In this document: positions 5,162-24,899 of the stretch, piece after piece
Position numbering within the stretch: the stretch's first letter is position 1
Layout of the letters: every line of letters starts with the position of its first letter
Sequence record: AJ748296.1
Reading direction: 5' to 3' (one strand)
Length of the DNA: 33,641 nt
Notes under the pieces: generated by a model
What the model was told of the DNA's origin: nothing
Seen by the model: the letters and a program-made list of their open reading frames with translations, nothing else
Databases searched by the model: none
Program-made: the position numbers and the translations under genes

Positions 5162-5204
5162 AAGCTAGCTAAATTGCTAAGACATAAATAAAGTCACACA
5201 ACTA

Positions 5205-5222
5205 ATACATAATATAATGTAT
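5205..5222. promoter_or_regulatory. Palindromic box ATACAT-N6-ATGTAT upstream of ORF399
   Basis: atacat aatata atgtat; recurs at 10774 and 20512, with one-mismatch copies at 11498, 14097 and 24821. Confidence 0.6.
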
Positions 5223-5397
5223 ATAGTGTGTTCTTTTTATAAGTAAAACTTGATTAAATTCTTATTTATGACAACAAAATTTTTTTATAAAAATCTCATA
5301 GCAAGTAAATCAAACCATATACATAATATATATTATATAGTATATTGGTTTAAGAATTAGTTGAGAAAAAAAAGAAAATATCTTTAATTAAATTTTT

Positions 5398-5568
5398 TTA
5401 ACCGTTTCTCTTTTGCAAATACTCCTTTATAGCCTCTTCAATTGCCTGAGTTAGCTGGAGATTATTTTTTGCACAATAAACTTTTAGTCTAGTCTTTAAA
5501 TCTTTATCCATATATATACCAAATACTGCTTTTTGTTTCTTTTTTTGACTCTGTTCTTGAGTTTGCAT
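5398..5568 (-). CDS. svtR: SvtR ribbon-helix-helix transcriptional repressor, 56 aa; not in the ORF track
   Basis: Manual translation MQTQEQSQKKKQKAVFGIYMDKDLKTRLKVYCAKNNLQLTQAIEEAIKEYLQKRNG*; RHH pattern, GAGG RBS, and canonical position next to rep. Confidence 0.92.
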   Translation of the reverse strand: MQTQEQSQKKKQKAVFGIYMDKDLKTRLKVYCAKNNLQLTQAIEEAIKEYLQKRNG

Positions 5569-5592
5569 TTTTCCTCATTTTAAGATTTTGAA

Positions 5593-5952
5593 TTATGACA
5601 TTTTTATATCTTTTTTTGTCTTTAGCATATACTTATATACATTTTTTATATCGCTAATAGACTTTGGAACTAATTCAATTCTAATGTCAGAATGTGAAGG
5701 CATATGTTTGTGAACTCTAGAATAATCTAATTTTTTATTCGTGAAAACTAAAATATGATAATGTAGACCATTTGAATTTTTTGTAGTTTCTTTTATAGAA
5801 AATACATGTGAATTTTTATCATGATTATAAATATAACTACGAAATTTTCTAAATATTTTTTCAGTATCTCCATACTTATAATTAGTTGTAATAGTAATGA
5901 AATAAGTGTAAATATAAGAAAAATGAAAATTTAAAACTTTTTTCAAATCCAC
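5593..5952 (-). CDS. rep: HUH-superfamily replication initiator Rep (ORF119)
   Basis: Motif I (FITITT), motif II (LHYHILV) and motif III (YKYMLK); GTG start. Confidence 0.92.
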   Translation of the reverse strand: MDLKKVLNFHFSYIYTYFITITTNYKYGDTEKIFRKFRSYIYNHDKNSHVFSIKETTKNSNGLHYHILVFTNKKLDYSRVHKHMPSHSDIRIELVPKSISDIKNVYKYMLKTKKDIKMS

Positions 5953-6083
5953 GATATTACGTGTGAAAATGACGTTTAAAAACTTATGTTGTTGGAAAAA
6001 CGAAAGGTTTAAAAATGCTTAATCAAAAATTTTTATAAACGAGGTGACTAGAGATTCAGAGTAGAAAATATATATGCTTAAGA

Positions 6084-6320
6084 GTGCCAAGTCAGTTAAA
6101 AGAAAAATTCTATGAAAAAAGAGATGAAATAAAGAGAGAATTAGATCAGATTTTAGAAGGTAAAAGAAAGTTAGAAATTAAAGAAATTAGTGATTTATAT
6201 GATGAACAAGTTTTTTTTACTGTAGATATGCTATATTATGAAAAACTTCAAGAACTAGCAAAAAAATACAAAAAATCGTTATCAAAAATAATAAGATCTG
6301 TATTCTTTAATCTAAGTTAA
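6084..6320 (+). CDS. 78-aa protein with C-terminal RHH-like domain
   Basis: QVFFTVDMLYYEKLQELAKKYKKSLSKIIRSVF is a strand-helix-helix RHH pattern; GTG start. Confidence 0.65.
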   Translation: MPSQLKEKFYEKRDEIKRELDQILEGKRKLEIKEISDLYDEQVFFTVDMLYYEKLQELAKKYKKSLSKIIRSVFFNLS

Positions 6321-6447
6321 ATCCTTTTTTTCTTTTTCTTTTTTATCTCTCATATTATGTATTGGAAATTCTATATTTCTCTTCATATTACGAAATTAAA
6401 AAGATATAAAAATGTCATAATTAAAAGATATTTTTAGGGGAAGAAAC

Positions 6448-6843
6448 ATGGCATCCCTTAAAGAAATAATAGATGAGTTAGGAAAACAAGCTAAAGAACA
6501 AAACAAAATAGCTTCTAGAATTCTAAAGATAAAAGGAATAAAAAGAATAGTAGTACAGTTGAATGCAGTACCACAGGATGGAAAGATAAGGTATTCGCTA
6601 ACAATACACAGTCAAAACAACTTCAGGAAACAAATTGGAATAACGCCACAAGATGCAGAAGATTTAAAGTTAATTGCCGAATTTCTAGAGAAATATAGCG
6701 ATTTCCTAAATGAATATGTAAAGTTTACTCCTAGAAATAATAACGCAATACAAGAAGAAGAAATAGATATGGAACAACAAGAAGAAAAAGAAGAGAAACC
6801 AAGAGAAAAAGGCAAAAAGAAATCAGTTGAAGAGGAGTTTTAA
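6448..6843 (+). CDS. ssDNA-binding protein (SIRV ORF131, gp17 family)
   Basis: Conserved position before the ATPase and nuclease; acidic disordered C-terminal tail ending SVEEEF; GGGGA RBS. Confidence 0.85.
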   Translation: MASLKEIIDELGKQAKEQNKIASRILKIKGIKRIVVQLNAVPQDGKIRYSLTIHSQNNFRKQIGITPQDAEDLKLIAEFLEKYSDFLNEYVKFTPRNNNAIQEEEIDMEQQEEKEEKPREKGKKKSVEEEF

Positions 6844-6868
6844 AACGTCATAGCCTAATTTTTTTTTC

Positions 6869-8191
6869 ATGAGTGGAAACCAGCAAACGAACTCTCAATT
6901 GTTTGAAAAGTTAAAAAGTCATTCTTTTTTTTATAATCCAAGAGATAATGAAAGAATTTTAAGTCTAATTCTTGGAGAAAAACAAGTTGAAGAAAATAAG
7001 AAAATTGAGATTTTAAAAGCTTATAAAAGAGGAATAGATTCACAATATTTTAGTGCTAATTTGCCATATTATAACGAAATAAAATTTATTTCTAAGATAA
7101 CTGGATTTAAGGTAAAAGATGATCTAGTTATTGCAAAATTTCAAAATGGATTTACTGGTGATTTTGATCCTCATGAAATTGCAGATAATCCAGATGATTT
7201 TTACAACCTAATTTCTTCATATATGTTTGTAAAAATTAAAAAAGGATCAGAAAATTGGTTTATTGATGAAATATTTTCTATTGAACCTCCTAATAATTTT
7301 GAAATTGCAAAAGAAATTCTAGAAGAAGCTGATAAAGAACATTTAACTTATGCCGTTTTACTTCAAGCTTTTGGCTATGATTCGCAAAAAATGGATTCAG
7401 ATGATATTTTTCTAACTTTACCGCGATTATTTCCATTATTTAAATCTCCAATTACTAAGAGACAAATTAATACTATTGAAATTTCAAACCGCGGAACTGG
7501 AAAAACTACAACATTTATGATTTTACAAGAAGTTTTCAATTTCAGATATTACACTGAACCGCCGACTTATGCAAATTTAATATATGATGCTAGAAATAAT
7601 ATGTATGGTTCAGTATTTTTATCGAATGGATTAATTTTTGACGAAATACAAACTTGGAAAGATGGATATGCAGTTAAAGAACTAAATTCTATAAATTCCA
7701 CTCTTTCAACTGGAATTGAAAATTGTATATGGACTAGAGGCGCCGGTACAGAAAGTAAATCTGCTACAATTCAAAAATGTATTCCAATAATTTATGCTGG
7801 AAATCCATTTTCACTAACTCTAGATAAATATCAAACTCCAGATATAGAATCATATTTACAACAATATGAAATTTTTACGCCTGCAATTCTAGATAGAATT
7901 CATATTATTCAATTAGCAATTAAGAAAACTTATGATAAAATAATAAATGCTAGAGTTCTATATCCTTCAATTCTAAGAGCATTAGTAGAATTAATTCAAG
8001 AAAAAATTAACAGAACTACAAATTATGCAGATTGTGGGAATTTGGAAAGTAGGAGAAAAGAACAATCTATAGATATTCAAATAGTTCTACAAGCACTTGA
8101 TATAGATCTGCAAATTGGAAAAGTTTCAAATGAAGAAGTATGTAATAAAATTGTGAATTTAATGAGATTTAGTAATTTAGGAGGATGGTAA
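6869..8191 (+). CDS. AAA+ ATPase, BrxL/Lon_2-like (ORF440, gp18 family; ssDNA annealing)
   Basis: Walker [10 protein letters not shown], Walker B LIFDE, sensor YAGN, arginine finger ILDRIH. Confidence 0.88.
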
Positions 8192-8808
8192 TCATGAATT
8201 ATGAAGATCATATAAAAGAAAGCTTTAAAGTTAAATATCCTGCAGATACGATTTTTCCATCTGAAGTTGGTATTTGTTATAGAAAAAGTTATCTTGCTAG
8301 AAATATTGAATTTGAAAGAGGAATAAATGAAATTTATTTAGATTTAGGAGAACAATATCATGAGAGAATTGAACAATATTTTAAAGAAAAATTGAATTGT
8401 CAAACTGAAGTTGAAATTAAAGATGAAATTGAAGGAATAAAAATTAGCGGTAGAATTGATATAGTTTGTAATAATGACTTATTGGAAATTAAAACAATTA
8501 GTTATAATTATTTTCAAGTAAAAGAATATCACTTATATCAAGTTGCATTATATTATCATATTCTTAAAAAGCAAAATTATCAAATTAATAATGTCTATAT
8601 TATATATTTAAATAGGAATACTAGAGAAGTTAAGCAATTTAAAATTGATGAAAAAGTTTTAGAAAATTATTATCAAAAAGTTATTGAATGGATAAAGAAA
8701 TTTAAAGAATATCTAAAAGAAACAGATTATAAAAAAGTCCCAGGAGTTAACAATTATATTTGTAAATCATGTGAATTTAAACAAAAATGCATTATATCAC
8801 TTTTTTAA
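8185..8808 (+). CDS. Cas4-like RecB-family nuclease (ORF207, gp19 family)
   Basis: N-terminal Cys (GICYR), G..YH, GRIDIV, LEIKT, QVALY and C-terminal [10 protein letters not shown] Fe-S cysteines. Confidence 0.92.
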
Positions 8809-8871
8809 TGAAAAAATAGAAGAGTAAAAAGGTATTTAAATGTCATATTCGAAAAACTTAAAATAGAGAAC

Positions 8872-9117
8872 ATGAGTCAAATAGAAGAAATCATAAAAAG
8901 TTTAAATAAAAAAGATATAAAAGATATAATAACCAAGAATATTATTTTTTTAGTTGAACCTCAAATCTTGTTTTATGCAAAAAAGAGAAATAGGATAGTA
9001 GGATATCTAGAAATTGCAGAAAAACATTATCGTTTTGAACTAATATTTAGTAAAGATAATAGCGTAAGTGTAACAATTGGAGAAGTAATAGTGTTTGGAA
9101 ATGGTGAATTGAAATGA
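8872..9117 (+). CDS. Hypothetical 81-aa rudiviral protein
   Basis: Clean ORF after a TGTCATA promoter box at 8841; stop overlaps the next ATG. Confidence 0.75.
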
Positions 9118-9293
9118 TGAGAATTGTCACTTTTAAAATTCCAGATGAAATGTTATTATTACTAGATGCATATGCAATAAAGCACAAGATGAATAGATCA
9201 GAAGTAATAAGATTAGCAATAGAGAAATTAGTAGTAGATGAAATGAAAAATGAACCAGTACCAAGAGCTAAAGTTGAGAAAATAAAGTTCTAA
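9114..9293 (+). CDS. 59-aa RHH/CopG-type DNA-binding protein; not in the ORF track
   Basis: Manual translation [59 protein letters not shown]; TF.IP...L..LD......NRSEVIR.AI is a classic RHH; ATGA coupling to ORF81. Confidence 0.88.
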
Positions 9294-9312
9294 AAATTAG
9301 GGTGAAAAAAAC

Positions 9313-9849
9313 ATGACAGAACAAACAAAATATGTAGAACAATTAAAAAATATTGTAGATGCAATTTTAGAGAATAAAAGAATATTAGTTTATAGAAATG
9401 AAATTAATAAAGATCTAGACAATTATTTCACATTATACTATAATGATAATGATAGTGATTATGACATTTTAACAATTCCATTTATTCTAGAGAATTTAAA
9501 AGAAGAAAAAGATGTTCTAATATATTTTTATGAAACTGAGAAATTTAATATAGATGAATTATCAGAATTAATTGTAGATTACATAGATTACAAGAAAAAG
9601 TCCTGTCTAACAAAACATTTAGTGTATTCTGAATTATTAAGATTAATAGATCTATATAATTATAAAATTTCTGAAGATTATAGTAATTTCAATAAAAATA
9701 CATTTTCAGGCGAAATTAAATATTTAATAATGTTTAATTCAGATAAATATTCTACAATTACAGAGAAAATAGAATATTGTAATTACTGTATGCATGATAA
9801 AAATGTAAGTGTAGGAGTTCAAAAATGTGTAACTTATAAGTTAGAATAA
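9313..9849 (+). CDS. Hypothetical 178-aa acidic protein
   Basis: GGGTGA RBS; Tyr/Asp-rich; C-terminal CNYC motif. Confidence 0.75.
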   Translation: MTEQTKYVEQLKNIVDAILENKRILVYRNEINKDLDNYFTLYYNDNDSDYDILTIPFILENLKEEKDVLIYFYETEKFNIDELSELIVDYIDYKKKSCLTKHLVYSELLRLIDLYNYKISEDYSNFNKNTFSGEIKYLIMFNSDKYSTITEKIEYCNYCMHDKNVSVGVQKCVTYKLE

Positions 9850-9858
9850 TTTATTTTT

Positions 9859-10335
9859 TTAATCTTCTTTTGCTAAAGTTACTCCTTTTTGATTTTGATA
9901 TTTCCCGTTATAAGGCTTTTCAACTGGAGTTAAAGTATGGGCGAAAATTAAATGTAAAAATCTTTCTCCTGATTTTAATTTGACAGGAATTGAAGAACCA
10001 ACTAATTCTATAGTAAGTTGACCTTCAAATCCCGCATCTACAATTGTCGGCGGAATTAATAATCCTTTTCTTGCGAAAGTTGATCTTAAATTACAAAATG
10101 CTATAATATCATTTGATAATTTTATATATTCTTTTGTTGTTAAAAGTACATGTTCATTTGGATAAATTATAAATTCATCTCCTACTTCTTTTTCCATATT
10201 TTCTTTTATCCTAACTATTTCATTTCCAATTTTTAAGTCTACACCGTTTTCTCTAATTGTATCTTCACTTAATGGATCTATAACAAGCTTATTTGAATTT
10301 ATATATCTTTTTATATCTCTATCTGAAAGAATCAT
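9859..10335 (-). CDS. dut: dUTPase (dCTP deaminase/dUTPase family)
   Basis: [36 protein letters not shown] and YNGKYQNQ motifs. Confidence 0.95.
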
Positions 10336-10347
10336 CTTTTCTCAGTT

Positions 10348-10653
10348 TTAACTATCGTTTTCTGACATATTTATATCTCCACAGATTGCCGAAATTTTAA
10401 ACATATTTTTATCATATCTCCAATTTACTTTTATATAATTTGGATATTTGAAAGTACGAACTAAATATTTTAGCATAGACATCCCGGCTTTTTCATATTC
10501 TTTCTTTTTCATATTTATTTTTATTTGCATTAATATTATTTCTTCATCTTCAAAAACATTAAAGAAATAAATATTGTCGGAATATCTACTTTCTAGCCAA
10601 TTTCGGAATTGAATTATATATTTTCTACATTCATTCTTTATATCAATTTCCAT
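10348..10653 (-). CDS. Hypothetical 101-aa protein
   Basis: Clean ORF upstream of dut on the same strand; TGTCATA box at 10670-10676 (minus strand). Confidence 0.75.
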   Translation of the reverse strand: MEIDIKNECRKYIIQFRNWLESRYSDNIYFFNVFEDEEIILMQIKINMKKKEYEKAGMSMLKYLVRTFKYPNYIKVNWRYDKNMFKISAICGDINMSENDS

Positions 10654-10773
10654 ATTTTAGTTAAGCAGATATGACAATTTAATAGTTTTGTGTATTACAT
10701 TATATAGTATAATATATAGTATATAATTTCCGGGATTATTTTCATAGTAATTTTTACAAATCTTAGTAGTCAT

Positions 10774-10791
10774 ATACATTATATTATGTAT
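10774..10791. promoter_or_regulatory. Palindromic box ATACAT-N6-ATGTAT upstream of the coat-protein gene
   Basis: atacat tatatt atgtat, 50 nt before the ATG at 10842. Confidence 0.6.
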
Positions 10792-10841
10792 AAGACGTGA
10801 AAATTTATTAATTTAAAGAATAAAATTGATATTGACCAAAA

Positions 10842-11246
10842 ATGGCAAAAGGTCACACAAAAAGATCATATAGCCAAAGGTACGCAAAATGGCAAGCCAA
10901 ATTTAATGCGTTTAGTAACCCAACAGTAGCATCTACTATATTGTCAAATGTAGCTCCTGTTGCCCAACAGAATTTCCAGACTAATGTCCCAACATTTACC
11001 GCGGTTAACGAAAATGTTAGTGCAGTTCTTTCACAATATGGAATAACTGGGCCTAACAGAGCTATATATCAAGGTTTTGGTTTGAAGATTGCTAGAGCAC
11101 TTAATAGGATTGGGAGCGGGCCAGCTTTAGTAAATATGATAAACGGTTTGAAAAGTTATTATATTTCAGCTTTTAACGCTAATCCTCAAGTATTAGATGC
11201 TGTAGTAAATATAATAACTGGAAGCCCGACTGGATACGTAAGTTAA
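10842..11246 (+). CDS. Major coat protein (ORF134, SIRV2-fold MCP)
   Basis: MAKGHTKRSYSQRYAKWQAKFNAFSNPTVAST... recognisable rudivirus MCP with a basic N-terminus. Confidence 0.96.
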   Translation: MAKGHTKRSYSQRYAKWQAKFNAFSNPTVASTILSNVAPVAQQNFQTNVPTFTAVNENVSAVLSQYGITGPNRAIYQGFGLKIARALNRIGSGPALVNMINGLKSYYISAFNANPQVLDAVVNIITGSPTGYVS

Positions 11247-11280
11247 AATATTTAAGCTATTTTTTTCTTTTTTTCTTTAT
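11247..11280. terminator. T-rich convergent terminator between MCP and the zinc-finger gene
   Basis: Run ttttttcttttttcttt directly after the MCP stop. Confidence 0.5.
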
Positions 11281-11444
11281 TCTTCTTCAGTCTTTATTTC
11301 TATATATTCCCCAGTTCTCAAACTTATCCTCCTACAATTAGATAATTTTAAATTTGTATTATGCTTTCTTAAATGAGTTATCATACTTTTCCTTTTTATA
11401 TAAATTTCTCCACAAATTGGACATTCATATCCTAAGAGTGCCAT
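11277..11444 (-). CDS. C2H2 zinc-finger protein (55 aa from ATG 11444)
   Basis: YECPICGEIYIKRKSMITHLRKH; the track extends to a TTG at 11489 but ATG 11444 is the likelier start. Confidence 0.85.
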   Translation of the reverse strand: MALLGYECPICGEIYIKRKSMITHLRKHNTNLKLSNCRRISLRTGEYIEIKTEEE

Positions 11445-11576
11445 AAGGAGAAATTTGGATTTGACATTTTTAAATGCTATTAAATCCAATCAACCATATA
11501 CATTATATAATATATATGAATTATAGGTTAAGTTGTTAGTCAGCTTTATTTTTGTCATAATTTTTATTTTTATCTC

Positions 11577-12584
11577 ATGAAAACTGCAATTTTAACTATG
11601 AATTATTCTTCTATATCTAATGTTTCTGAAGATATTGCAGAAGTTTTGAGAGAAAATGGAGAAATCGTAACAATAACAAAAAATCCATTTTATATTCCAA
11701 AAGCTGAAAAATTAATAGTTTTCATTCCATTCCATCCGCCATCTCTAAATCCATATCTTTATGCTTTTTATCAATTTAATGGAAAGAAATTATTTTATAC
11801 TACTTGTGATGGAATTCCAAATATTGAAATTGTAAATAAGTATTTATTACAAGATGTTAAATTTATACCAAATTCAAAATTTTCAGCTATGAATTTACAA
11901 GAAGTAGGTCTACAAACAGATTTGCCAGTTTTCCATGGAATTAATTTTAAAATTGTAGAAAATGCCGAAAAATTAGTTCCACAATTAAAACAAAAGTTAG
12001 ATAAAGATTTTCCTAACACGATAAAATTTGGAATTGTGAGTGGATTAACAAAAAGAAAAAATATGGATTTAATGTTACAAGTTTTTAATGAACTAAATAC
12101 AAAATATCCAGATATTGCTAAAAAAATTCACTTTTTCGTAATTTCTCATAAACAATTTACGCAAAATGAAGTTCCCGCAAATGTACATTTTGTAGCAGAG
12201 TTTGGATTTAATAGTAGAGAATATATATTTGGATTTTATGGAGCTATGGATTATATTATTGTTCCAAGTGGAACAGAAGGATTTGGAATGCCAGTCCTTG
12301 AGAGTATGGCTATGGGAACTCCAGTTATCCATCAACTTATGCCCCCGTTTGATGAATTTACAAGCTGGCAGTGGAATTTATTAATTAAATCTTCAAAAGT
12401 TGAAGAATATTATGATAAAGAGCATGGACAAAAGTGGAAAATTCATAAATTTGAAATTGAAGATATGATAAATGCAATTATATTAGCTTCTGAACTTCAA
12501 GATAGAGAAGAAAGAAGTACTAAATTAAAAGAATTAGCAAAAAGATATGATATAAGAAATTTATATACTAGATTTTTAGAATGA
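11577..12584 (+). CDS. GT-B (GT4) glycosyltransferase (ORF335)
   Basis: RKN motif and PSGTEGFGMPVLESMAMGTPVI (E-X7-E). Confidence 0.93.
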   Translation: MKTAILTMNYSSISNVSEDIAEVLRENGEIVTITKNPFYIPKAEKLIVFIPFHPPSLNPYLYAFYQFNGKKLFYTTCDGIPNIEIVNKYLLQDVKFIPNSKFSAMNLQEVGLQTDLPVFHGINFKIVENAEKLVPQLKQKLDKDFPNTIKFGIVSGLTKRKNMDLMLQVFNELNTKYPDIAKKIHFFVISHKQFTQNEVPANVHFVAEFGFNSREYIFGFYGAMDYIIVPSGTEGFGMPVLESMAMGTPVIHQLMPPFDEFTSWQWNLLIKSSKVEEYYDKEHGQKWKIHKFEIEDMINAIILASELQDREERSTKLKELAKRYDIRNLYTRFLE

Positions 12585-12634
12585 TATAAATTTGTCATAT
12601 TCTTTATATTTTTATAGAGGAAAGAGGTGGAAAA

Positions 12635-13105
12635 ATGGTAATCGAAGTATTTTATATGTGTCCAATTGATTATAAAGATATTTTAACTCTTGACCTAGAT
12701 AAAGGAGGCATAGCAATAAGAGAATGTGATCATGTTTTTGGTTATATAATACCGCCTTCATTTCCGGAAAGAGAAGATAAAATTTGTCCTAAGCAATACA
12801 GAATTAGAACATGGACTGCTAATGAATGGAAATATGGAGTTTGTGTACAATCTAATGTATCATCTAAACATGTAGTTAGGAATATAAAGAAATTGAAAAA
12901 AACATTGAAAGAATTGTTGAATTATCGGGAAGACCAAATAATATATTTCATTCTTGATGGTTCTACAAGAAGAGAAATTATAGATAAGATAAAGGATATG
13001 ATAAAAGATATGTTTGTTGGTTATAAAGCAGATAGCGAATTTTGTACTCCTAAAATTATTACTATAGTAGGAGTTCTAAATAAAGTAACAATTTATTTTC
13101 TTTAG
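12635..13105 (+). CDS. Hypothetical 156-aa Cys-containing protein
   Basis: GAGGTGG RBS; TGTCATA box at 12593. Confidence 0.8.
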   Translation: MVIEVFYMCPIDYKDILTLDLDKGGIAIRECDHVFGYIIPPSFPEREDKICPKQYRIRTWTANEWKYGVCVQSNVSSKHVVRNIKKLKKTLKELLNYREDQIIYFILDGSTRREIIDKIKDMIKDMFVGYKADSEFCTPKIITIVGVLNKVTIYFL

Positions 13106-13166
13106 CCTTCTTCATTCTTATTAATATAAATTTGTCATAATACATAATATATAATAATGATAGAGA

Positions 13167-13295
13167 ATGAAAGTAAAAATAATATGTGAAAAATTAACTA
13201 CATTTCATATAAATTCTGAAGATGAAGAATTAGTAAATAGAATAATAAAAATGTGTAATGATTATAATTTAAATTACAAAATTGAACTTGAATAA
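13167..13295 (+). CDS. Candidate 42-aa small protein; not in the ORF track
   Basis: MKVKIICEKLTTFHINSEDEELVNRIIKMCNDYNLNYKIELE*; own TGTCATA box at 13133; fills the gap and ends 5 nt before the convergent ORF64. Confidence 0.55.
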   Translation: MKVKIICEKLTTFHINSEDEELVNRIIKMCNDYNLNYKIELE

Positions 13296-13300
13296 TTTTT

Positions 13301-13495
13301 TTACCATATTCCCCATTCTTTACTATCTATAAGTTTCATTTTTCCATTTTCTATCATATTTGCATAATCTTTTAATATTTTTGGCAATACTTTTTTTAAT
13401 TCTTCTTCTGTTGGCTTATTTGGAACTTGATCAATTAAAATATAAATCTTAATATGTAATTCTTTATTTTTTTCATCATAATAATAAGTTATCAT
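13301..13495 (-). CDS. Conserved rudiviral 64-aa protein
   Basis: Clean ORF with ATGA coupling to the upstream gene. Confidence 0.75.
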   Translation of the reverse strand: MITYYYDEKNKELHIKIYILIDQVPNKPTEEELKKVLPKILKDYANMIENGKMKLIDSKEWGIW

Positions 13496-13716
13496 TTTTG
13501 ATCCAACTTCCTTTTTATTTCTTCAACTTGTCTTGATAATTCATCTTGTTTTATTTTTAATTCTTCAATTTCTGTCTTTAGATTTGATAATTCTGAATTT
13601 ACTATCTCTTTTACTGCATCTTTTAATGCCTGTTTAATTTTTAGATATAATTGAATAATTGCAAATAATGTAGTTGTAGTAGTGGAAATTATAGTGAGGA
13701 CTAATGTAGTCTCACT
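13492..13716 (-). CDS. Membrane-anchored coiled-coil protein (74 aa from MSETT)
   Basis: Hydrophobic N-terminus then heptads ELSNLKTEIEELKIKQDELSRQVEEIKRKL; start at 13716 overlaps the ORF110 stop. Confidence 0.75.
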   Translation of the reverse strand, partial: SETTLVLTIISTTTTTLFAIIQLYLKIKQALKDAVKEIVNSELSNLKTEIEELKIKQDELSRQVEEIKRKLDQK

Positions 13717-14044
13717 CATCTTCATTTTCCTCCTCAGATAATTCAAAATTTGCAGTACTATTAATTTGTTTCGCGTAAGGTTGAGGATATACTACGCGAA
13801 AATCATCTATAAAAATCTGCTTAGTTTGTTGATCTTGAATTATAGAAAATTGAAAATAGAAAGTAAAACCTGGAATATAAAGGTCAACAATTAATGGATA
13901 ATCGATAGTTTTCATAACAATTATTGAATTTGGTAAAAAACGTGATAAACCATAAATTTGACCTCTCTGTTCTAATTCTTTTATTTTATCAATTGCAATT
14001 CTAACAACTCCAAAAATATTTTGAAAAGGATCTTCAATTCTCAT
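13712..14044 (-). CDS. Conserved rudiviral 110-aa protein
   Basis: Clean ORF with an acidic tail; palindrome-like box at 14097-14114 upstream. Confidence 0.8.
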   Translation of the reverse strand: MRIEDPFQNIFGVVRIAIDKIKELEQRGQIYGLSRFLPNSIIVMKTIDYPLIVDLYIPGFTFYFQFSIIQDQQTKQIFIDDFRVVYPQPYAKQINSTANFELSEEENEDE

Positions 14045-14133
14045 ATGATATCTTTTATTTCAAGCCGTTAAAAAATATACAAGTAGCATAACTCATATAT
14101 ATTATATAATGTATATAGTGTCTGAATTTTGTG

Positions 14134-15522: not shown

Positions 15523-15608
15523 AGCTATCAATTTATATATCTCAAGTAGAAAAATAAACTTACAAATTGCATAATGTATATAAATGTCATACATTATTGA
15601 TTTAATAA

Positions 15609-16073: not shown

Positions 16074-16079
16074 CAGAAA

Positions 16080-16445: not shown

Positions 16446-16605
16446 ATTATACCTGGCGTTAGATGATTTGACTATGGCTTTAGCTACAGAAGATAAAGAA
16501 GAAGTTAGAAAAAGTGAAGTATTTCAGAAAGCATTAGAAGTTGTGAAAGTAGTTAAAGAAATGAGAAGATTACAAGTTAAACCGGCAGAAGGTGAGGAAA
16601 AATGA
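16381..16605 (+). CDS. Small helical protein (69-74 aa)
   Basis: Overlaps the hjc 3' end; TGTCATA box at 16370; ATGA coupling to the acrIII-1 start. Confidence 0.7.
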
Positions 16606-16946
16606 ATAAAGTCTATCTTGCAAATGCATTTTCAATAAATATGTTAACTAAATTTCCTACAAAAGTAGTAATTGATAAAATTGATAGATTAGAATTTTGT
16701 GAAAATATTGATAATGAAGATATAATTAATTCAATTGGACATGATTCAACAATTCAATTAATAAATTCACTATGCGGAACTACATTTCAAAAGAATAGAG
16801 TAGAAATTAAATTAGAGAAAGAAGATAAATTGTATGTTGTACAAATTTCACAGAGATTAGAAGAAGGAAAAATATTAACTCTTGAAGAGATATTGAAACT
16901 GTATGAAAGTGGAAAAGTTCAATTTTTTGAGATAATTGTAGACTAA
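16602..16946 (+). CDS. acrIII-1: AcrIII-1 viral ring nuclease (DUF1874, ORF114)
   Basis: [18 protein letters not shown] (catalytic His) and QRLEEGKIL motifs. Confidence 0.95.
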
Positions 16947-17223
16947 TAAGTAAAATAAAATTTTTTTCATCTTTTTGAGTTTGTTAGTTTAGGTTATCCC
17001 ATTTCTGCTAAAATTTTTTAATATATAAATGTTTTTACGCCGTTATTTTGCGTAATTTATCGATAAAAAAAGCTAATTTTACGTGAGTTAAAAGTTTAAA
17101 AAGATTTCTTGGAAATTCACGTTATTAGTTTATATAGTTGTCATTACAATTTTTCAACAGCTAAATGCAAAAAATTAACAGATGTAGAATTGAAAGAACT
17201 TTTAGATTTGTATTTTTTTAGTA

Positions 17224-20200
17224 ATGTTTATAATTTTGAAAAGAAACATTTTAATCAATATGAGTTTTCTACTAAATTTAGGAGAATTAGGAACATTCTT
17301 TGCAGATGAAATTGAAAATTTGGAAAACTTTACTAATTGGATATCTAGTGATTTTATAAATTTTATTAATGCAATAGTTAATGATATTAAAAATATTGCA
17401 AGTTTCCTAGGTCAAGCAATTTCCGATATTCCTACTTTTATGGTAAATATTGCAACTAATTTCTTAACAATTTTACAAAATTTTGTACAAACTGCAATTT
17501 CTACAATTCAAGGATTTGTTTCATGGTTTGAACAACAAGTTGTAGGAGCTTTTGAATTTCTATCTTCTATAGCGTCTGATTTTATAAATTCAGCATATTC
17601 ATTTTTCCAAAATGTGGCAAATGTATTTGCACAAATTATATCAGGTGTAATTTCGGATTTCTTAAACTTTTTTGGAGCTAATATGAAACATATTTCTAAT
17701 GCAATTTCTCAACTTAACCAATTTTTATCGCCATTTATTGCTCCAATTACAATTGGTAAATTTTTACCGGTAATTGTAGATAAATTGGCTGAAATTTTAC
17801 CAGAAATTGAAATAGATTTAGCTCCAGTTGGCTTAGGCGGGAAAATTCCAATTAAATTTGGAGAAATTATAAAAGCTTTTGCAGAAACTTCAGTAGATTT
17901 TTTAAATGAAATAAGAACAGAACTCGCGACAACTTTAAAACAATTTATAAAAGAACCATTTATTTCAGATTTTAAAATTTCTGCAAGAGAAATATTTAAT
18001 GAAATTGGTTTGGGCGATTTGCCATTTGCAGACCCGCCTTTTAACCTAATTGGAAGATGGGTAGCAGTTAGATCATTCGATGAAGTTAAAGATCATCTTA
18101 AAGAAACAATATTACTTACTGGATATCCAGAATGGTTTACTAACGCTTATCTAGAATCTCCAGTTAATGATTTCGCTCCTAGGAATCCTTTATTTAGACC
18201 AGTAGGAATTAGAGATTTAATTTTAGGAGCTCAATATGGAATTTTAAACATTTCAGATTTAGAAAAATATGCGTACAATAATTTATTAACTCCAAAAACT
18301 GCAAAATTAATGTATCAAAATCAAACTGCTAGAATTTTGCAGAGAGCTGTAGAACAAGGAATTAGACAATTCGTGATAACTCCTGAAAAAGCTTACCAAG
18401 AGATTATTGGAAATATTAATCTAACTGGTAAAGAATTGTTCTTAAAAACTTTCACATTAGAATATGAATATGCAGTTCAGAGAATTGTTAGACAATTCTT
18501 AAGATCATTATTATCTAGAGCATTATCAAATTTTGGAAGACCATATTTAGATTTTAAATATTTAGATGAGACAATTGCTAAATTATTTAAAGAACTAGGA
18601 TATCCAGAAGAAGTAAGAACAGTTTTCGATACTATGATTACACAATCTCAGCTAATTTATACTAATCAACTTCTATTAAGACAACTTCAACAAATTGTAA
18701 GACTAGGAATTTTTGATGAGAAAAAGATTAAAGAAGAATTGAAAGCTAATAAATTTAATGAACAAGTAGCATTACAAATTTTAGAAAGTGAACTGCAATT
18801 TGCACAATTGCAAAATACACTAAAAGAATATCAATTCAAATTGAAAAGTTTTCTAATTTCACCAAAAGATGTAGAAAACGATCTAAAGCATATTGGCTTC
18901 GATTCTGTAATTATTTCGGCTTTAATTTACGAAAATCAAATTGAGCCATTAATAAAATTCCAACTATCAAATATAGAAAGTTTGGCGAAAAAAGGCTATT
19001 TATCTTTAGATGAAATTAAAAAACAATTTAAAGCAATTGGAATAATAAAAGAATATGAAGACGCATTTATAAACTTTATAAATCAAGAATTACAAATATC
19101 TGCACTTTTGACAATTTTAAAAAGTCAATTGAGACAATTCCAAATAGATCCAAAAATTGCAGAAGCAGAATTAAAGAAATTGAATATTAATGAATACTTA
19201 TCAAATCAAATAATTCAAGAAGAGTATAATATAAATATAGCAAAATTACAATTAAGCGTAACTGAAAGTATTGCAAAAACATTATATTATGATCAACAAC
19301 AATTATCAGGAGAATTAGGAAAAATAGTAAAAGATAAAACTGCATTAGAACTGTATATTAAAAAATTATATTATGAATACATATATCCAAAAATTATTAA
19401 TTATCATTTACAATTAGCTAGACATGGAATTCTTTCAGATATTTCAAAATTGCCGAGAGAAGTTATAGAATATGAAATTAAGCCGGCACTATTAACTTAC
19501 CAAACTACATTAGAAATTGAATATATAAAAGAATCATTAAAAGATCTGGAAATTAAGCCTGATAATGCAATAAATGAATTAGAGAAATTAGGAATGCAAA
19601 AAGATATAGCTCAATTAATTGTAAATACCTATATTCCTACATTTTACAATATTCATACAATAATTCAAAATATTATTGAAGGACAATTGTATAAAGTCGG
19701 GAAAGTCCCAGTAAACTTAGGTAATGCAGAACCTGAATTAAAGAAATTAGGAATTCCTGATAGTCAAGTGAAAGCACTTTTGGAACAATATTCTACTACT
19801 TTTGGACTTGATATTTGGAGAAAATACTTACCTTCAATTTCCATAATAGAGAACGCAATAAAGTACAATTATCCAGATCAAAAATTAATAGAATATAGCT
19901 TTATCCCATCTGAATTATTGAATTTGTATACAAGTTATTATCAACATTTACTAATTGGTCAAGAAGTTCAATCTTTCAAATCTGAATATATAAATGCATT
20001 AATTTATAATTATCAGAATCTGCAATTAGAAAGTTTATTGAAACAATATGGAATAAATGAATCATTATTAAGCGTTATGAAATTATTTGCACAAGTAAGA
20101 AAAATTGTAACTGGACTTCAAGAACTATATCTCACGCCGACAAAAGCTCTTTCAATTAGCGAATATGTATCAAATCCACAACAATTACTACAAAAAGTAT

Positions 20201-20436
20201 TTACAGAATTCCAGATTCCGCAAGAACTACAAAATACATATTTTGAATATGCGAGAAATAGGAGAGTTAGTAGATATGTTAACGAAATAATTACAACAAT
20301 TAATCTATTATTTGAAAGACATAAAATTGACCTTAACACTGCACAATCCTATCTTCAACAACTAAAGAAATATGGATTAACAGATGAAGAAATTCAACTA
20401 ATATTACTCAATTGGCAATTAAGAAGTGCTTACTAA
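17224..20436 (+). CDS. Large virion terminal-fibre protein (ORF1070; alternative start at 17260)
   Basis: 1070-aa helical ORF at the canonical rudivirus position; amphipathic N-terminus and repeated ELKKLG-type units. Confidence 0.9.
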   Translation: MFIILKRNILINMSFLLNLGELGTFFADEIENLENFTNWISSDFINFINAIVNDIKNIASFLGQAISDIPTFMVNIATNFLTILQNFVQTAISTIQGFVSWFEQQVVGAFEFLSSIASDFINSAYSFFQNVANVFAQIISGVISDFLNFFGANMKHISNAISQLNQFLSPFIAPITIGKFLPVIVDKLAEILPEIEIDLAPVGLGGKIPIKFGEIIKAFAETSVDFLNEIRTELATTLKQFIKEPFISDFKISAREIFNEIGLGDLPFADPPFNLIGRWVAVRSFDEVKDHLKETILLTGYPEWFTNAYLESPVNDFAPRNPLFRPVGIRDLILGAQYGILNISDLEKYAYNNLLTPKTAKLMYQNQTARILQRAVEQGIRQFVITPEKAYQEIIGNINLTGKELFLKTFTLEYEYAVQRIVRQFLRSLLSRALSNFGRPYLDFKYLDETIAKLFKELGYPEEVRTVFDTMITQSQLIYTNQLLLRQLQQIVRLGIFDEKKIKEELKANKFNEQVALQILESELQFAQLQNTLKEYQFKLKSFLISPKDVENDLKHIGFDSVIISALIYENQIEPLIKFQLSNIESLAKKGYLSLDEIKKQFKAIGIIKEYEDAFINFINQELQISALLTILKSQLRQFQIDPKIAEAELKKLNINEYLSNQIIQEEYNINIAKLQLSVTESIAKTLYYDQQQLSGELGKIVKDKTALELYIKKLYYEYIYPKIINYHLQLARHGILSDISKLPREVIEYEIKPALLTYQTTLEIEYIKESLKDLEIKPDNAINELEKLGMQKDIAQLIVNTYIPTFYNIHTIIQNIIEGQLYKVGKVPVNLGNAEPELKKLGIPDSQVKALLEQYSTTFGLDIWRKYLPSISIIENAIKYNYPDQKLIEYSFIPSELLNLYTSYYQHLLIGQEVQSFKSEYINALIYNYQNLQLESLLKQYGINESLLSVMKLFAQVRKIVTGLQELYLTPTKALSISEYVSNPQQLLQKVFTEFQIPQELQNTYFEYARNRRVSRYVNEIITTINLLFERHKIDLNTAQSYLQQLKKYGLTDEEIQLILLNWQLRSAY

Positions 20437-20511
20437 CAATTTCCAAACACTATATACATTATATATTTTATATGAATTATAGTTGACAGACTTACATGAG
20501 AAACAACTCAT

Positions 20512-20529
20512 ATACATTATATTATGTAT
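20512..20529. promoter_or_regulatory. Palindromic box ATACAT-N6-ATGTAT upstream of the ORF564-family gene
   Basis: atacat tatatt atgtat, 43 nt before the ATG at 20573. Confidence 0.6.
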
Positions 20530-20572
20530 TAGATTTGAGTTTTTATTTACGGCATTTTTGATATATTATATC

Positions 20573-22225
20573 ATGCCTTTACCATATAAAGTAAACTTTA
20601 AATTGCCGTTAGAATACCTATCTCTCCAAGATTGGAATAACTTTGTTCAGAATTTAATATTTATAAATCAATATGGATCCGCTAAACTATTACAATATTA
20701 TCAAAATGGTAGTTTTCAAAATCTAAAAGATGTATTTGCAAAATATTTATATGTAGCACAGTTAAAAGTAAATGGATATAACGTATTATATAATTTGGCA
20801 AAACCTTTAGCATATACTTTTGGAAATGTTTTTCAAGAACTTATAAATAAACCTATTATCGAACTGTCTGAAGTTATTGTTCCAATACCATCATTAAATT
20901 ATAATACAAATTTCAAATTACCATCCATAGAAAAACAAATAGAAGTATTAATTCCTAACTTAATTTCTAAAATTACAATTCATGATCAAATAGCTGGCAC
21001 ACAATTTGTATTTTCTGGAAGTTCAAATTTAGAACAATTAACATATCAATATTTAAATCCTCAATATCTTCAAACTTGGAGAAGTATAACATTACAAAAT
21101 TTAGGTAATAGTTCAATTCAAATAAATAATTCAATTTATTTAATGCCGAAACAGTGTCTAAAAATTACAGTTTCAAATCCGCAAGATATACAAATTTCGG
21201 CACAAAATCCTACATTAGTAAGTGAATTAATTGAATTTGGAACAATTAAAATTACTGCTTATACAATTACAATTTCAAATTCTCAACCTGATCCAACCCC
21301 ATCTCCATTTCAACAATTACTAATTCTTAATTTATCAAACATAATTTCTAGTCCTTCTCAGTTACTTAATTTACAATTTTGCTTAGATGCTCAGTGTCAA
21401 ACGTCATTATATGCTTGGATTGAAAGTTATAATTCAAATTTATCAAGTGTATATATTTGGGTTAATTTACCGATTTCAATTCCAGCAAATTCTTCAATTA
21501 CAATTTATATGTTTGTAAGAAATACAATTCAATATCCTTATACTGGAATGGCGTCTAATTTAACTTCAACTTATGGACAATACGATAATGGTGAAAATGT
21601 ATTTCTATATTATAATGTTAATCCAACATCTACATCTGCCTGGACTATTTCGGGAAGTGCCGGTCTAACGACATCTGCACCTTCTGGATCTTATTTCTCT
21701 TCACCAAATGCATATTATGCTAATAGTGCAGTTGGAGATTATATGTATACCCAAATACCTAAGTTAAATACTAATGTAATTATAACATTTGATGTTTATA
21801 CTACTGGATTAGGAGATTTGTTTTTCTTAGTAAATAGTAGCGGAGCTGGACAAATGGCAAGACTAGATGGTAGAGGAAGTTCATATTATTCAGGTTTAGC
21901 AACAACATCCTCATGGACTTCATGGAATGCCCCGCCTTCTGGATTATCTGAAACTACAAATACATGGTATAAATATGATATTATTATATCAGGTTCAACA
22001 GCTACTGCATATATTGGCCCTGTTTCAAATAAATTAGCAACATTTGGAAATCAAGCAAATCAATTAACAATTTCCAATAATGGTAATTACCTCGGTCTTA
22101 TCGGAGATGGTTTAGGAAGTAGTTATATCACATACTGGAATGGTTTCGTTATTCGTGCTTTACCGCCTAATAATGTAATGCCATCTAATACAAATCCACA
22201 ATTAACTACAATTTATGTCGCGTGA
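20573..22225 (+). CDS. Minor virion protein (ORF562/564 family) with DUF2341-like and beta-sandwich C-terminal part
   Basis: Likely start MPLPYKV at 20573 (track start 20483); PTPSPFQQLL..LYAWIE..IWV.LP..IPAN..ITIYM resembles DUF2341; Ser/Thr/Gly-rich C-terminus. Confidence 0.85.
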   Translation: MPLPYKVNFKLPLEYLSLQDWNNFVQNLIFINQYGSAKLLQYYQNGSFQNLKDVFAKYLYVAQLKVNGYNVLYNLAKPLAYTFGNVFQELINKPIIELSEVIVPIPSLNYNTNFKLPSIEKQIEVLIPNLISKITIHDQIAGTQFVFSGSSNLEQLTYQYLNPQYLQTWRSITLQNLGNSSIQINNSIYLMPKQCLKITVSNPQDIQISAQNPTLVSELIEFGTIKITAYTITISNSQPDPTPSPFQQLLILNLSNIISSPSQLLNLQFCLDAQCQTSLYAWIESYNSNLSSVYIWVNLPISIPANSSITIYMFVRNTIQYPYTGMASNLTSTYGQYDNGENVFLYYNVNPTSTSAWTISGSAGLTTSAPSGSYFSSPNAYYANSAVGDYMYTQIPKLNTNVIITFDVYTTGLGDLFFLVNSSGAGQMARLDGRGSSYYSGLATTSSWTSWNAPPSGLSETTNTWYKYDIIISGSTATAYIGPVSNKLATFGNQANQLTISNNGNYLGLIGDGLGSSYITYWNGFVIRALPPNNVMPSNTNPQLTTIYVA

Positions 22226-22231
22226 TCTATA

Positions 22232-23485
22232 ATGTCTTCAACTTGTTATCCAATTACTTCATTTGGAAATTTATTGAATAAAATAGCTAAACAATCTTTA
22301 ATTTCATCTCAAGTCTGGAACGAAATAGTTCAAGATCTTTATACTGCATATTCAGTTTACAAATATATAAATACAACATTACAATATCAACTTTTCTATG
22401 GAAATATATATACTCTTTATGATTTATTTAACAATTTAGATTTATATATTTTAAATGCAAAACCATATCCATTTACGCCATTAATCCAAGCTAGACCTGG
22501 ATTACCATTAACTGTAAATTACATGAATAATTTAATAAATGCAATTACGAAAGTAGCAAATGAAAATAATATAGCATTAGCAAAACCTTTAAATTTTGTT
22601 CAGTCTAATGAAATTGTAACATCTAGAAAAATTAATGATATTATATATGCAATTAATCAATTCTTAACTTTTGATTATAATACTTATTTTCTATTAGATT
22701 GTAATGGCTCACTATTTAATAATTTAATAAATTCCAAATCGGCATTTTTAAATGTATTAATTGATAATCCTTCACAAAATATTTCTACTAATAATATATA
22801 TATCAAAAATTTGATTATAAATTATTTAAATACATTTTTGAATTTTTATGGAAGTTCAGCTATCGATAATCTTTTAGTTGGAAAAACTTATACTAATTTC
22901 GGAATAAATACATATGATAACTCATATATTCAAAAAATTATAATGTATCAACTTTATGGTTTAATAGAAACATATAATAATTCATATATTCAAAAAATTA
23001 TAGTTAATGAACTTAATGGTGCAATAGAAACAAATGATAATTCATATATTGACACAATTATAGTTAATCAACTTAATAATGCAATAAATGCATTTGATAA
23101 TTCGTATATTAAAACAGTTATAATTAATCAATTTAATGGCAGTATGTATATACTTTCATATATTGATACAATTATATTTACTCAACTTTCTATATATCTG
23201 CCCATAAATACTGGTAATCATATAGGAAATCTTATAATTAATACAAATTATGGAACTCCAGAAATATCTGATAGTACAGTTCTACAAAATTTTATAATTG
23301 ATACAAATTATCAAGAAATAGATATAGATGAATACGCAATTATAAAAAATCTTATAATTAATACAAATTATGGAACTGTAAAAATATATGATAATGCAAT
23401 TGTTGAAAATTTGATATGTAAACAAAATTATGGACAAATACAAATAAGCGGAAATGCACAAGTAATAAATAATAATTGTCAATAA
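22232..23485 (+). CDS. 417-aa protein with C-terminal 20-aa beta-solenoid-like repeats
   Basis: Repeats DNSYIQKIIMYQLYGLIETY / NNSYIQKIIVNELNGAIETN / DNSYIDTIIVNQLNNAINAF and NLIINTNYGT x2. Confidence 0.85.
   Translation: MSSTCYPITSFGNLLNKIAKQSLISSQVWNEIVQDLYTAYSVYKYINTTLQYQLFYGNIYTLYDLFNNLDLYILNAKPYPFTPLIQARPGLPLTVNYMNNLINAITKVANENNIALAKPLNFVQSNEIVTSRKINDIIYAINQFLTFDYNTYFLLDCNGSLFNNLINSKSAFLNVLIDNPSQNISTNNIYIKNLIINYLNTFLNFYGSSAIDNLLVGKTYTNFGINTYDNSYIQKIIMYQLYGLIETYNNSYIQKIIVNELNGAIETNDNSYIDTIIVNQLNNAINAFDNSYIKTVIINQFNGSMYILSYIDTIIFTQLSIYLPINTGNHIGNLIINTNYGTPEISDSTVLQNFIIDTNYQEIDIDEYAIIKNLIINTNYGTVKIYDNAIVENLICKQNYGQIQISGNAQVINNNCQ
22916..23380 (+). repeat. In-frame 60-bp tandem repeats inside ORF417
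   Basis: Units at 22916, 22976, 23036 and 23096; exact 31-bp duplicate at 23227-23257 and 23347-23377. Confidence 0.85.
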
Positions 23486-23962
23486 CTATAATTTACAGAA
23501 TACAAATTCTCTATTATCATCAGTTACAAAAGTTAGAATTGTTCCGTATAATTTTCTTAATAAATCGAATCTATTTTCTGTCCAATCATGTATAGCTATG
23601 CAATATTGTTTATATTTCTGTAATTTAGAAAAATCTAGATTTTTCTCACAGCCTTCACAATCCATAACTAGAATATCAGTATCTGGATATTCGTTACTTT
23701 TCCATTCACCTTTTGATTCAACTTTATCACAAATCTTGAATTCTTTACAAACTGTTTCTTTAAAGATTTGATTTAGTTTCTCTTCTTTTTCAAATCCAAT
23801 TATCTTTTTCGCTCCTTTCAATAGAAAATATAAAGCAGAACTACCACAGTCATTTCCAATTATTGTAATTGTTTTATCTTTTACATCTAATTTTGAATAT
23901 GCAAATTCGAATTCCCTCCAATAACAGCACTGCAATTTACAAAAATAATCATCAAAATTCAT
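23486..23962 (-). CDS. SAM-dependent methyltransferase (ORF158, FkbM-like)
   Basis: IIGNDCGSSAL (motif I variant), IIGFEKE, and ILVMDCEGCE. Confidence 0.85.
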   Translation of the reverse strand: MNFDDYFCKLQCCYWREFEFAYSKLDVKDKTITIIGNDCGSSALYFLLKGAKKIIGFEKEEKLNQIFKETVCKEFKICDKVESKGEWKSNEYPDTDILVMDCEGCEKNLDFSKLQKYKQYCIAIHDWTENRFDLLRKLYGTILTFVTDDNREFVFCKL

Positions 23963-24768
23963 TATTGAACTACCTCAAATAGAGCATAAACTGTGCATTT
24001 TCCAGTAGCCCAGGCGTAAACGTTACTAGGATTTCTAACGTGAAATTCTAAACTATCTCCTGGCAAAATCGGGAAACTATTATATAATTTGTTACCGATA
24101 TATACAATATAATTACTTAAATTTTGCAAAATTATTCTAACTGTTTCTATTGTAGAACCATTATAAATTGGAGATGGAATTGTTGATAAACTAATTTGCA
24201 AACCTTCTATAGTTGGAGGAGATAAAAATAAAGTTAATTTATTTAAAGTATTAGCTAATCCGACAGTCGCTAAATAGAAATATGTGAAAGTATAAGCTAA
24301 AAAATCTGCAATTGAATAAAGAGCATTTATTCCAGTTTTTTGTAATTGTGAAATTTGAGAACTTAAAGTAGAAGTTAAATCTGAAATAGTTCTATACAAA
24401 TTTGTATATAAATCATATGAAATTTCTTTTGGTAATTGAGAAATAGAATAATAAAGTTGTTGATTTGAATATAGAATTTGGTTAATTTGTTGATTTGCAG
24501 TTCCAATAAAACCTGCAATATATATTGGATCTTGTTCTGTTAGTACTGGTTGTCCAGATACGTAAACTTCTTTCTGGAAAAATCCAGCTAATGCAGATAT
24601 ATTATTCGGGATATATAGATTTCCATTTTGTAGAATTGAAGTTAAGGAATTTCCACCAGTTTCATAAAGTTGATATAGAAGTAATGTAGCAGTGTTCCAC
24701 ATACTTGACGTTAATCTCTGGAATGGACTAGCTAAAAGTGAAGAAATTGAAGTATAAGTTACACTCAT
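23962..24768 (-). CDS. Conserved rudiviral 268-aa protein
   Basis: Clean ORF, Ser/Thr/Asn-rich like the virion proteins; palindrome-like box at 24821-24838. Confidence 0.8.
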   Translation of the reverse strand: MSVTYTSISSLLASPFQRLTSSMWNTATLLLYQLYETGGNSLTSILQNGNLYIPNNISALAGFFQKEVYVSGQPVLTEQDPIYIAGFIGTANQQINQILYSNQQLYYSISQLPKEISYDLYTNLYRTISDLTSTLSSQISQLQKTGINALYSIADFLAYTFTYFYLATVGLANTLNKLTLFLSPPTIEGLQISLSTIPSPIYNGSTIETVRIILQNLSNYIVYIGNKLYNSFPILPGDSLEFHVRNPSNVYAWATGKCTVYALFEVVQ

Positions 24769-24899
24769 ACAATTTTAATAAGTAACTGACTAAAATAAAG
24801 TGTCACATCTTATAACTCATATATATTATATAATGTATATGGTTTGTTCTCATTTAGATCATTTAAAATTAAAATATGTCATATTGTTTAGAAATTATT

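Follow-up and report, generated by a model that had tools for sequence, protein, structure and literature searches.

What is the palindrome that stands in front of the capsid gene and other central genes of a rudivirus, and which protein reads it? The window analysed here is the whole of sequence record AJ748296.1, the complete linear genome (33,641 bp) of Sulfolobus islandicus rudivirus 1 (SIRV1), variant XX, and genes are named as in that record. A first-pass annotation of this DNA had noticed the sequence ATACAT-N6-ATGTAT in front of mostly virion-type genes, and had proposed that it binds a dimeric regulator of late genes, with SvtR, a zinc-finger protein, two ribbon-helix-helix (RHH) proteins and a host factor as candidates. 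We found that this motif is the core of a longer palindrome, placed at fixed distances from orthologous start codons, whose features support well the prediction that it is the binding site of a dimeric or higher-order regulator. In our judgement the palindrome is probably an upstream regulatory protein site that acts mainly positively, and the host protein Sta1, or a relative of it, is its best-documented occupant.

The genome contains three perfect copies of ATACAT-N6-ATGTAT, at positions 5205, 10774 and 20512, compared with 0.04 expected, and none of 100 shuffled sequences reached three. Three further copies, at 11498, 14097 and 24821, carry one mismatch, and all six positions are those listed by the first-pass annotation. 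The A+T content of the SIRV1 genome is 75%, and that of the intergenic DNA is still higher. A strict null was provided by Markov models of order 1-4, trained solely on 4.26 kb of central intergenic DNA and run in 1000 simulations. Under these models at most 0.011 perfect and 0.165 one-mismatch copies are expected, and no simulation gave three or six; all six strong copies lie within 4.3 kb of central intergenic DNA. The reported identity over 29 bp was also recovered, since the segments 14088-14116 and 24812-24840 are the same at every base, and 11496-11524, when reverse-complemented, has one differing base. The palindrome noted in the SIRV1 genome is thus confirmed, and the case for it is stronger than the first-pass annotation had made it.

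Weaker matches were evaluated with a position-weight matrix made from the SIRV sites, with which each genome was scanned against its own order-3 Markov null, using a reporting cut-off of 12. Further one-mismatch matches at 491 and 33134 (terminal repeats) and at 29726 (within ORF98) have centres containing G or C and matrix scores below 12, and are best taken as chance. Three positions had been described as half-sites, and two of them stand in altered form: the one at 20454 is a weak full copy (score 17.5) and the one at 5319 a decayed copy. The third, at 13140, is unsupported, with a matrix score under the reporting threshold and a position between two convergent gene ends. The accessory arms, said to be free of the motif, indeed hold no strong copy, but they do hold one weak match (score 15.0, at 31485).

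To describe the element itself, 23 sites from six viruses (SIRV1, 2, 3, 4, 8 and SSRV1) were pooled into a logo of 46 half-sites. Reading outward from the centre, the half-site consensus is A-T-W-A-T-G-T-A-T-A-T-G, followed by two variable bases and a weaker T-T-G. The hexamers and their spacer are thus the core of a larger palindrome of 24-34 bp, with the form CATATACAT-WATATW-ATGTATATG over 24 bp and weaker outer TTG arms that extend it to about 34 bp. The core ATGTATATG is almost invariant in the logo, while the centre positions are A or T. When orthologous sites were compared, the hexamers and their CAT/ATG flanks were unchanged across virus genera and the outer flanks diverged, with centre positions 7 and 12 swapping A and T freely. 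Invariant hexamers combined with a variable centre and variable outer flanks are the usual signature of a protein recognition site. The idea of a directional element, in which ATACATTATAT is always promoter-distal, held in SIRV1 only and was dropped, because the centre flips freely in the SIRV2, 3, 4 and 8 orthologues.

The position of the element within promoters is equally regular. A separate TATA-like box lies between every copy and the gene start, often followed by GTC, a promoter element described by Kessler (2004), as cited in a later paper. The spacer between the 18-mer and the TATA-like box is 12 nt at ORF399, ORF564 and ORF134, 21-22 nt at ORF110, ORF268 and ZF55, and 29 nt at ORF335, and in most cases the TATA-like box is 31 nt from the ATG. 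In a survey of eleven rudivirus genomes, the distances from the palindrome centre to the ATG grouped at 52, 60-62 and 68-72 nt; the steps between these classes are suggestive of about one helical turn. Two copies sit between divergent genes (ZF55/ORF335 and ORF268/ORF209). The invariant hexamers and flanks, the A/T-flipping centre, the fixed distances to orthologous start codons and the position upstream of the core promoter together lead to the reading of the palindrome as a regulator site.

A motif scan of other rudiviruses, proposed as a check by the first-pass annotation, found the element at orthologous promoters. It is present at the same promoters in SIRV2-11, SSRV1, MRV1 and ARV3 (the last added by blastn), and more weakly in SRV. 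The matrix scan placed copies at gp14, gp26, gp32 and gp39 of SIRV2 and at the same genes of SIRV3; SIRV4 and SIRV8 have two capsid-gene copies together with copies at the homologues of ORF110, ORF486/ORF154, ORF564 and ORF268. The capsid-gene copy was recovered in SSRV1 and MRV1, and SRV has lower-scoring copies at its ORF110, ORF564 and ORF268 homologues. ARV1 and SBRV1 gave no match above the cut-off of 12. Among IMG/VR contigs, all those with at least two sites, and all matching contigs with SIRV1 gene homologues, are of rudivirus origin, many of the rudivirus contigs with sites coming from hot-spring metagenomes. Matches to archaeal viruses in the GenBank phage collection were confined to rudiviruses, and the remainder were single chance matches in AT-rich bacteriophages. 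Hosts of at least four genera (Saccharolobus, Metallosphaera, Acidianus and Stygiolobus) are represented among the viruses that carry the element, which thus goes with the virus family. An exact-pattern scan of prokaryote genomes was uninformative on the host, since the matches listed were AT-rich bacteria and a few unrelated archaea, attributable to chance, with no Sulfolobales among them.

Variant forms of the element were also seen. In SBRV1, looser variants are visible by eye, and before its ORF335 homologue (about 10130-10165) the hexamers ATACAT and ATGTAT are 12 nt apart and not 6. SSRV1 (2303, 10943 and 22780) and ARV2 (4242) have, at other promoters, a variant with half-sites of the ATTCAT/ATGAAT type. 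In the Italian hoswirudiviruses this variant stands before the gene of an ORF440-type ATPase and between the homologues of ORF486 and of the pyramid protein, and in SSRV1 it also precedes that virus's own TFB-like gene. At least 12 of the 16 perfect 9-mer half-sites (ATWATGTAT) of SIRV2 are located in promoters that have the palindrome there or in related SIRVs, and the gp28 and gp42 promoters, where only one half of the palindrome survives, are among them.

Which protein occupies the site is addressed most directly by work on SIRV1 itself. Kessler et al. (2006; PMC1635249) pulled down a single host protein of 14 kDa, Sta1 (SSO0048, Lrs14 family), on fragments of promoters 56, 134 and 399, from infected and uninfected extracts alike, and none bound a control promoter. 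Promoters 134 and 399 had been picked for that study as probably regulated. The study also reported that SIRV1 promoters are poorly transcribed by basal factors alone, and that Sta1 binds as a dimer and stimulates transcription when TBP or TFB is limiting. On promoter 134, DNase I footprinting showed two protected regions of about 20 bp, the first within the core promoter and the second about 30 nt further upstream.

The capsid-gene palindrome occupies 10771-10794 (perfect 18-mer at 10774-10791), with its centre 60 nt from the ATG of ORF134. The core promoter of this gene (10802-10831, plus strand) equals the 'Reg2' oligonucleotide of Kessler et al. (2006), that is, the Sta1-protected region 2 with its TATA box and TFB-recognition element (BRE). 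Its consensus match is centred about 30 nt downstream of the palindrome centre. Because this core promoter lies downstream of the palindrome, the upstream region protected by Sta1 should be on or next to 10771-10794. The published Sta1 consensus, ATNT-N8-(A/T)NAT, has a match at 10772-10787, overlapping the palindrome, and another on the ORF399 copy (minus strand, 5209). The option of a host factor has experimental backing, from the retention of Sta1 on promoters 134 and 399 and from its footprint upstream, by about 30 nt, of the core promoter of ORF134. The virus and the two promoters are common to the 2006 work and to the site described here, and the upstream protected region, the dimeric binder and the activation at limiting TBP or TFB reported in 2006 would fit this site as well. 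The Sta1 site defined in 2006, however, is a degenerate imperfect repeat of 16 bp, common to the core promoter and to promoter 56, and not a palindrome of 24-34 bp. We suggest that the AT-rich repeat reported in 2006 as degenerate is probably located on a palindrome whose sequence is tightly conserved. Neither the full length of this palindrome nor its six copies nor its retention throughout the virus family is described in the literature searched, where a search with the motif letters gave primer sequences only.

Several observations weigh against Sta1 as an activator that reads this site. The Sta1 consensus is nearly uninformative, with 384 occurrences in the genome (11.4 per kb), and at this density it cannot define the site; the overlap between footprint and palindrome rests on the phrase '~30 nt upstream' and on the consensus match at 10772-10787. 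According to a 2024 review, Sta1 and its relatives lack sequence specificity, prefer AT-rich DNA and belong with proteins of the nucleoid type, and the consensus is no more than AT-rich. Stimulation by Sta1 was reported for promoters 56 and 134 and not for promoter 399, which has a perfect copy. At promoters of the 12-nt spacer class, moreover, the palindrome's weak outer arm extends as far as the BRE, and a protein bound there may act as a repressor. The three determinants of Sta1 binding at the host promoter sso0777 (TTATT, CANGNA and TTATT, all required; Abella 2007) are absent from the palindrome, whose 18-mers contain no TTATT. Three of the four fixed letters of CANGNA are matched in the half-site WATGTA, and TTATT is present in the downstream TATA-like boxes.

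The promoter of ORF56, the gene for SvtR, has at 5620-5650 two tandem words (T/A)GTATAT, which repeat directly the GTATAT core of the palindrome half-site. They lie where that fragment has its sole match to the Sta1 consensus of 2006.

The main alternative is an operator for a regulator that the virus itself encodes, in place of host Sta1: the palindrome would then be read by ORF59 as a dimer of dimers, by the weakly RHH-like ORF78 or by another small viral protein, which could switch the genes on or off in the course of infection. We regard this as the lesser possibility, though one to be taken seriously. It would account well for the fact that the element tracks the virus family across four host genera and was not found in other virus families of the Sulfolobales, and for the variation of the half-sites by virus genus, with ATGAAT in the SSRV1/ARV2 group and ATGTAT in the SIRVs. 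The half-sites are spaced 12 bp centre to centre, a distance that would let two RHH dimers sit on the same DNA face, an argument that draws on operators of the Arc/MetJ type. Pull-downs from infected cells gave Sta1 only, although a protein of 6-7 kDa could have been missed. The individual candidates fare unevenly. SvtR, named by the first-pass annotation, has a published consensus that is unlike the palindrome: its operator ATnnTTCAAnAnnnnnAAAATG, allowing up to two mismatches, matched none of the palindrome copies, and the genome holds no excess of the pattern (11 occurrences against 6.3 expected). For the zinc-finger protein, published work on a homologue describes a monomer with a preference for GC-rich DNA. 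Presence or absence of the candidates was scored by tblastn in 11 rudiviruses, for proteins that are very short and diverged. SvtR and the zinc finger had no detectable homologue in SSRV1, MRV1 and SRV, which carry the element, and ORF78 had none in SSRV1, although proteins so short may escape detection. As scored in this way, homologues of SvtR, ORF78 and the zinc finger are distributed differently from the element.

The SIRV2 homologue of ORF59 is gp21 (aCcr1), an essential RHH protein that is conserved in all rudiviruses and can be neither deleted nor replaced by its host homologue (PMC9976892). It binds AGTATTA in host cell-cycle promoters and, unlike the host counterpart, also the viral gp17 and gp20-21 promoters (PMC9976892). 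The aCcr1 box (AGTATTA, or the ccr-2 sequence TGTATTAT, bound by gp21 and by host SiL_0190) shares with the palindrome the word GTAT followed by A/T; it is read by a small RHH protein that every rudivirus encodes, and gp21 also binds some viral promoters. The box differs from the palindrome in being a 7-mer. The word AGTATTA/TGTATTA overlaps only two of the six SIRV1 sites, TGTATTA being found at the ORF399 copy (5203, minus strand) and at the ORF564 copy (20525, plus strand), whereas the other copies have TGTATAT or TGTATAA. At the gp15 promoter, which carries tandem GTATAT words, binding of gp21 was only non-specific (PMC9976892). The idea that gp21 recognises the half-site was rejected, since half-site counts in the gp21-bound gp17 and gp20 promoters are at background level. 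ORF59 stays a live candidate but is not favoured. A bolder version makes the palindrome the operator of a rudivirus master regulator, most plausibly ORF59/gp21, acting on viral promoters and on host cell-cycle genes and switching on a family-wide regulon for morphogenesis and DNA modification from spacers about one helical turn apart (12, 21-22 and 29 nt before the TATA box). This we consider doubtful; if true, it would give archaeal viruses their first defined activator regulon of virus-wide extent.

Two further explanations dispense with a dedicated regulator. The palindrome could be a symmetric TATA/BRE-like promoter, used as an alternative upstream start or for divergent or antisense transcripts, as its TATA-box-like centre (TTATATAA and similar) and the two copies between divergent genes might suggest. 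We consider this very unlikely: the experimentally defined core promoter of ORF134 is downstream, every copy has its own TATA-like box 12-29 nt further on, about 31 nt before the ATG, and symmetry over 24-34 bp is kept at ORF399, ORF110 and ORF564, where there is no divergent gene. The possibility raised by the first-pass annotation, that the motif is simply a TATA sequence, is answered by the same observations. Alternatively, the palindrome could be a hairpin or cruciform signal outside transcription, serving replication priming, recombination or genome packaging. The sequence is palindromic, and rudivirus replication passes through single-stranded intermediates. Single strands, however, fold only weakly (-2.3 to -4.7 kcal/mol even at 37 C), and two of four hairpins were no better than shuffles; such structures would melt at the growth temperature of the host, which is about 75-80 C. 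The copies are also tied in position to start codons and TATA boxes, and not to genome ends or to even spacing. A hairpin role was rejected on the folding energies, and we find it the least credible of all the explanations.

Returning to the reading of the palindrome as an upstream, mainly positive regulatory site, a sequence-specific dimer or dimer of dimers would dock on the double-stranded palindrome upstream of the BRE/TATA core, and the palindrome itself, rather than general AT-richness, would be what is recognised. With the palindrome centre about 21-39 nt upstream of the TATA-like box, the bound protein could help TBP and TFB to load on weak core promoters, and a set of promoters of rudiviral core genes would in this way be co-regulated. 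Activation would presumably operate at all copies, and the binder in vivo would be Sta1, another Lrs14-family protein or a virus-encoded RHH protein. A similar mode of action is known for the upstream activating sites of Ptr2 in Methanocaldococcus jannaschii, which are also dimer-type sites upstream of BRE/TATA that help to recruit TBP. The likeness is confined to mode of action, since Ptr2 is an Lrp-family protein with other sites in another phylum. Within the rudiviruses themselves, the consensus of early genes controlled by Aca8 in the genome arms (PMC11065993) is likewise a virus-wide cis-regulatory cassette that defines a co-regulated class. That cassette, however, surrounds strong BRE/TATA elements at terminal anti-defence genes, whereas the palindrome, which is unmentioned in PMC11065993, lies upstream of weak-looking core promoters of central genes.

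The set of genes preceded by the palindrome was described in the first-pass annotation as mostly of virion type, and this is partly so. The capsid gene ORF134 and the ORF564-family minor structural gene have copies, and in North American SIRVs the ORF486-family virion gene also belongs to the set. The other units are ORF110, ORF268 with its methyltransferase, the ORF399-ORF306 operon, and the divergent pairs ZF55/ORF335 and ORF268/ORF209; the set includes two glycosyltransferase units and a methyltransferase. The ORF399-ORF306 operon probably encodes a putative transporter and a DpdA-like DNA-modifying enzyme. The large tail-fibre gene ORF1070 had no copy in the matrix scan. Since the regulated set is broader than virion genes, the label of a late virion regulon is only partly supported. 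For a shared delayed expression the one hint, an indirect one, is the choice of promoters 134 and 399 in 2006 as probably regulated.

The individual sites follow the same plan. In front of the ORF399-ORF306 operon (minus strand), the palindrome covers 5202-5225, with its perfect 18-mer at 5205-5222 and its centre 52 nt from the ATG at 5161; the corresponding copies are at 8622 in SIRV2 and 6469 in SIRV3. The TATA-like box and GTC of this promoter (5181-5192, minus strand) stand between palindrome and ATG, 12 nt from the former and 31 nt from the latter. The decayed second copy (5316-5339) is 166 nt upstream of ORF399, and its SIRV3 counterpart is a full site with a score of 30.2. The one-mismatch copy at 11495-11518 lies between ZF55 (minus strand, ATG 11444) and ORF335 (plus strand, ATG 11577), at 62 and 70 nt, respectively. 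ZF55 (11277-11444, minus strand) is a C2H2 zinc-finger gene of 55 aa that is missing from the record annotation and has its own TATA and GTC box at 11463-11475. The copy at 14094-14117, also with one mismatch, precedes the ORF110-ORF84-ORF64 unit (minus strand), with its centre 62 nt from the ATG at 14044.

The ORF564-family gene has a perfect copy at 20509-20532 (18-mer 20512-20529), 52 nt upstream of the ATG at 20573 and followed by a TATA-like box at 20542-20550. The weak copy at 20451-20474 is 58 nt upstream of this main site and 110 nt before the probable start codon, and is kept in SIRV2 (23678) and SIRV3 (20686). In the record this gene is annotated as ORF580, with a TTG start (20483) that precedes the two palindrome copies as well as the TATA-like box. 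The first ATG past the palindromes, at 20573, gives a protein of 550 aa and the same 52-nt geometry as at ORF399, and the SIRV2 and SIRV3 homologues are alike. Between ORF268 and ORF209, the one-mismatch copy at 24818-24841 is 62 nt from ORF268 (minus strand) and 70 nt from ORF209 (plus strand), the latter if ORF209 starts at ATG 24900. The annotated start of ORF209 (24876) falls inside a TATA+GTC-like box (within 24861-24903). The in-frame ATG at 24900 would give 201 aa, which is the length of the SIRV4 and SIRV8 homologues, and would yield the 62/70 arrangement seen at ZF55/ORF335.

A second gene absent from the record annotation is ORF78 (6084-6320, plus strand), whose product of 78 aa has a weak RHH match below the Pfam cut-off. 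A second class of promoters, with the approximate form ATAAAAATGTCATAAT (TATA plus GTC), is found at about 5580-5600, 6415-6440, 8840-8865 and 11463-11475. Those of ORF56 and ORF131 are nearly identical, and those of ORF81 (TATTTAAATGTCATAT) and ZF55 (TTTAAAAATGTCAAAT) are looser. Promoters of this class differ from the TTTATT-type boxes found downstream of most palindromes.

For archaeal viruses, no more than a few repressors and a single host activator account for what is known of transcription control. The one well-defined DNA element described here links the capsid gene and a minor structural gene with glycosyltransferase and methyltransferase units, and with an operon that probably serves DNA modification, in rudiviruses of several genera and hosts. 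The palindrome offers a concrete bait for finding its regulator, and a clean system in which to study how an archaeal upstream site acts on TBP and TFB, including the dependence on spacing. It also allows the Sta1 footprint of 2006 to be reinterpreted.

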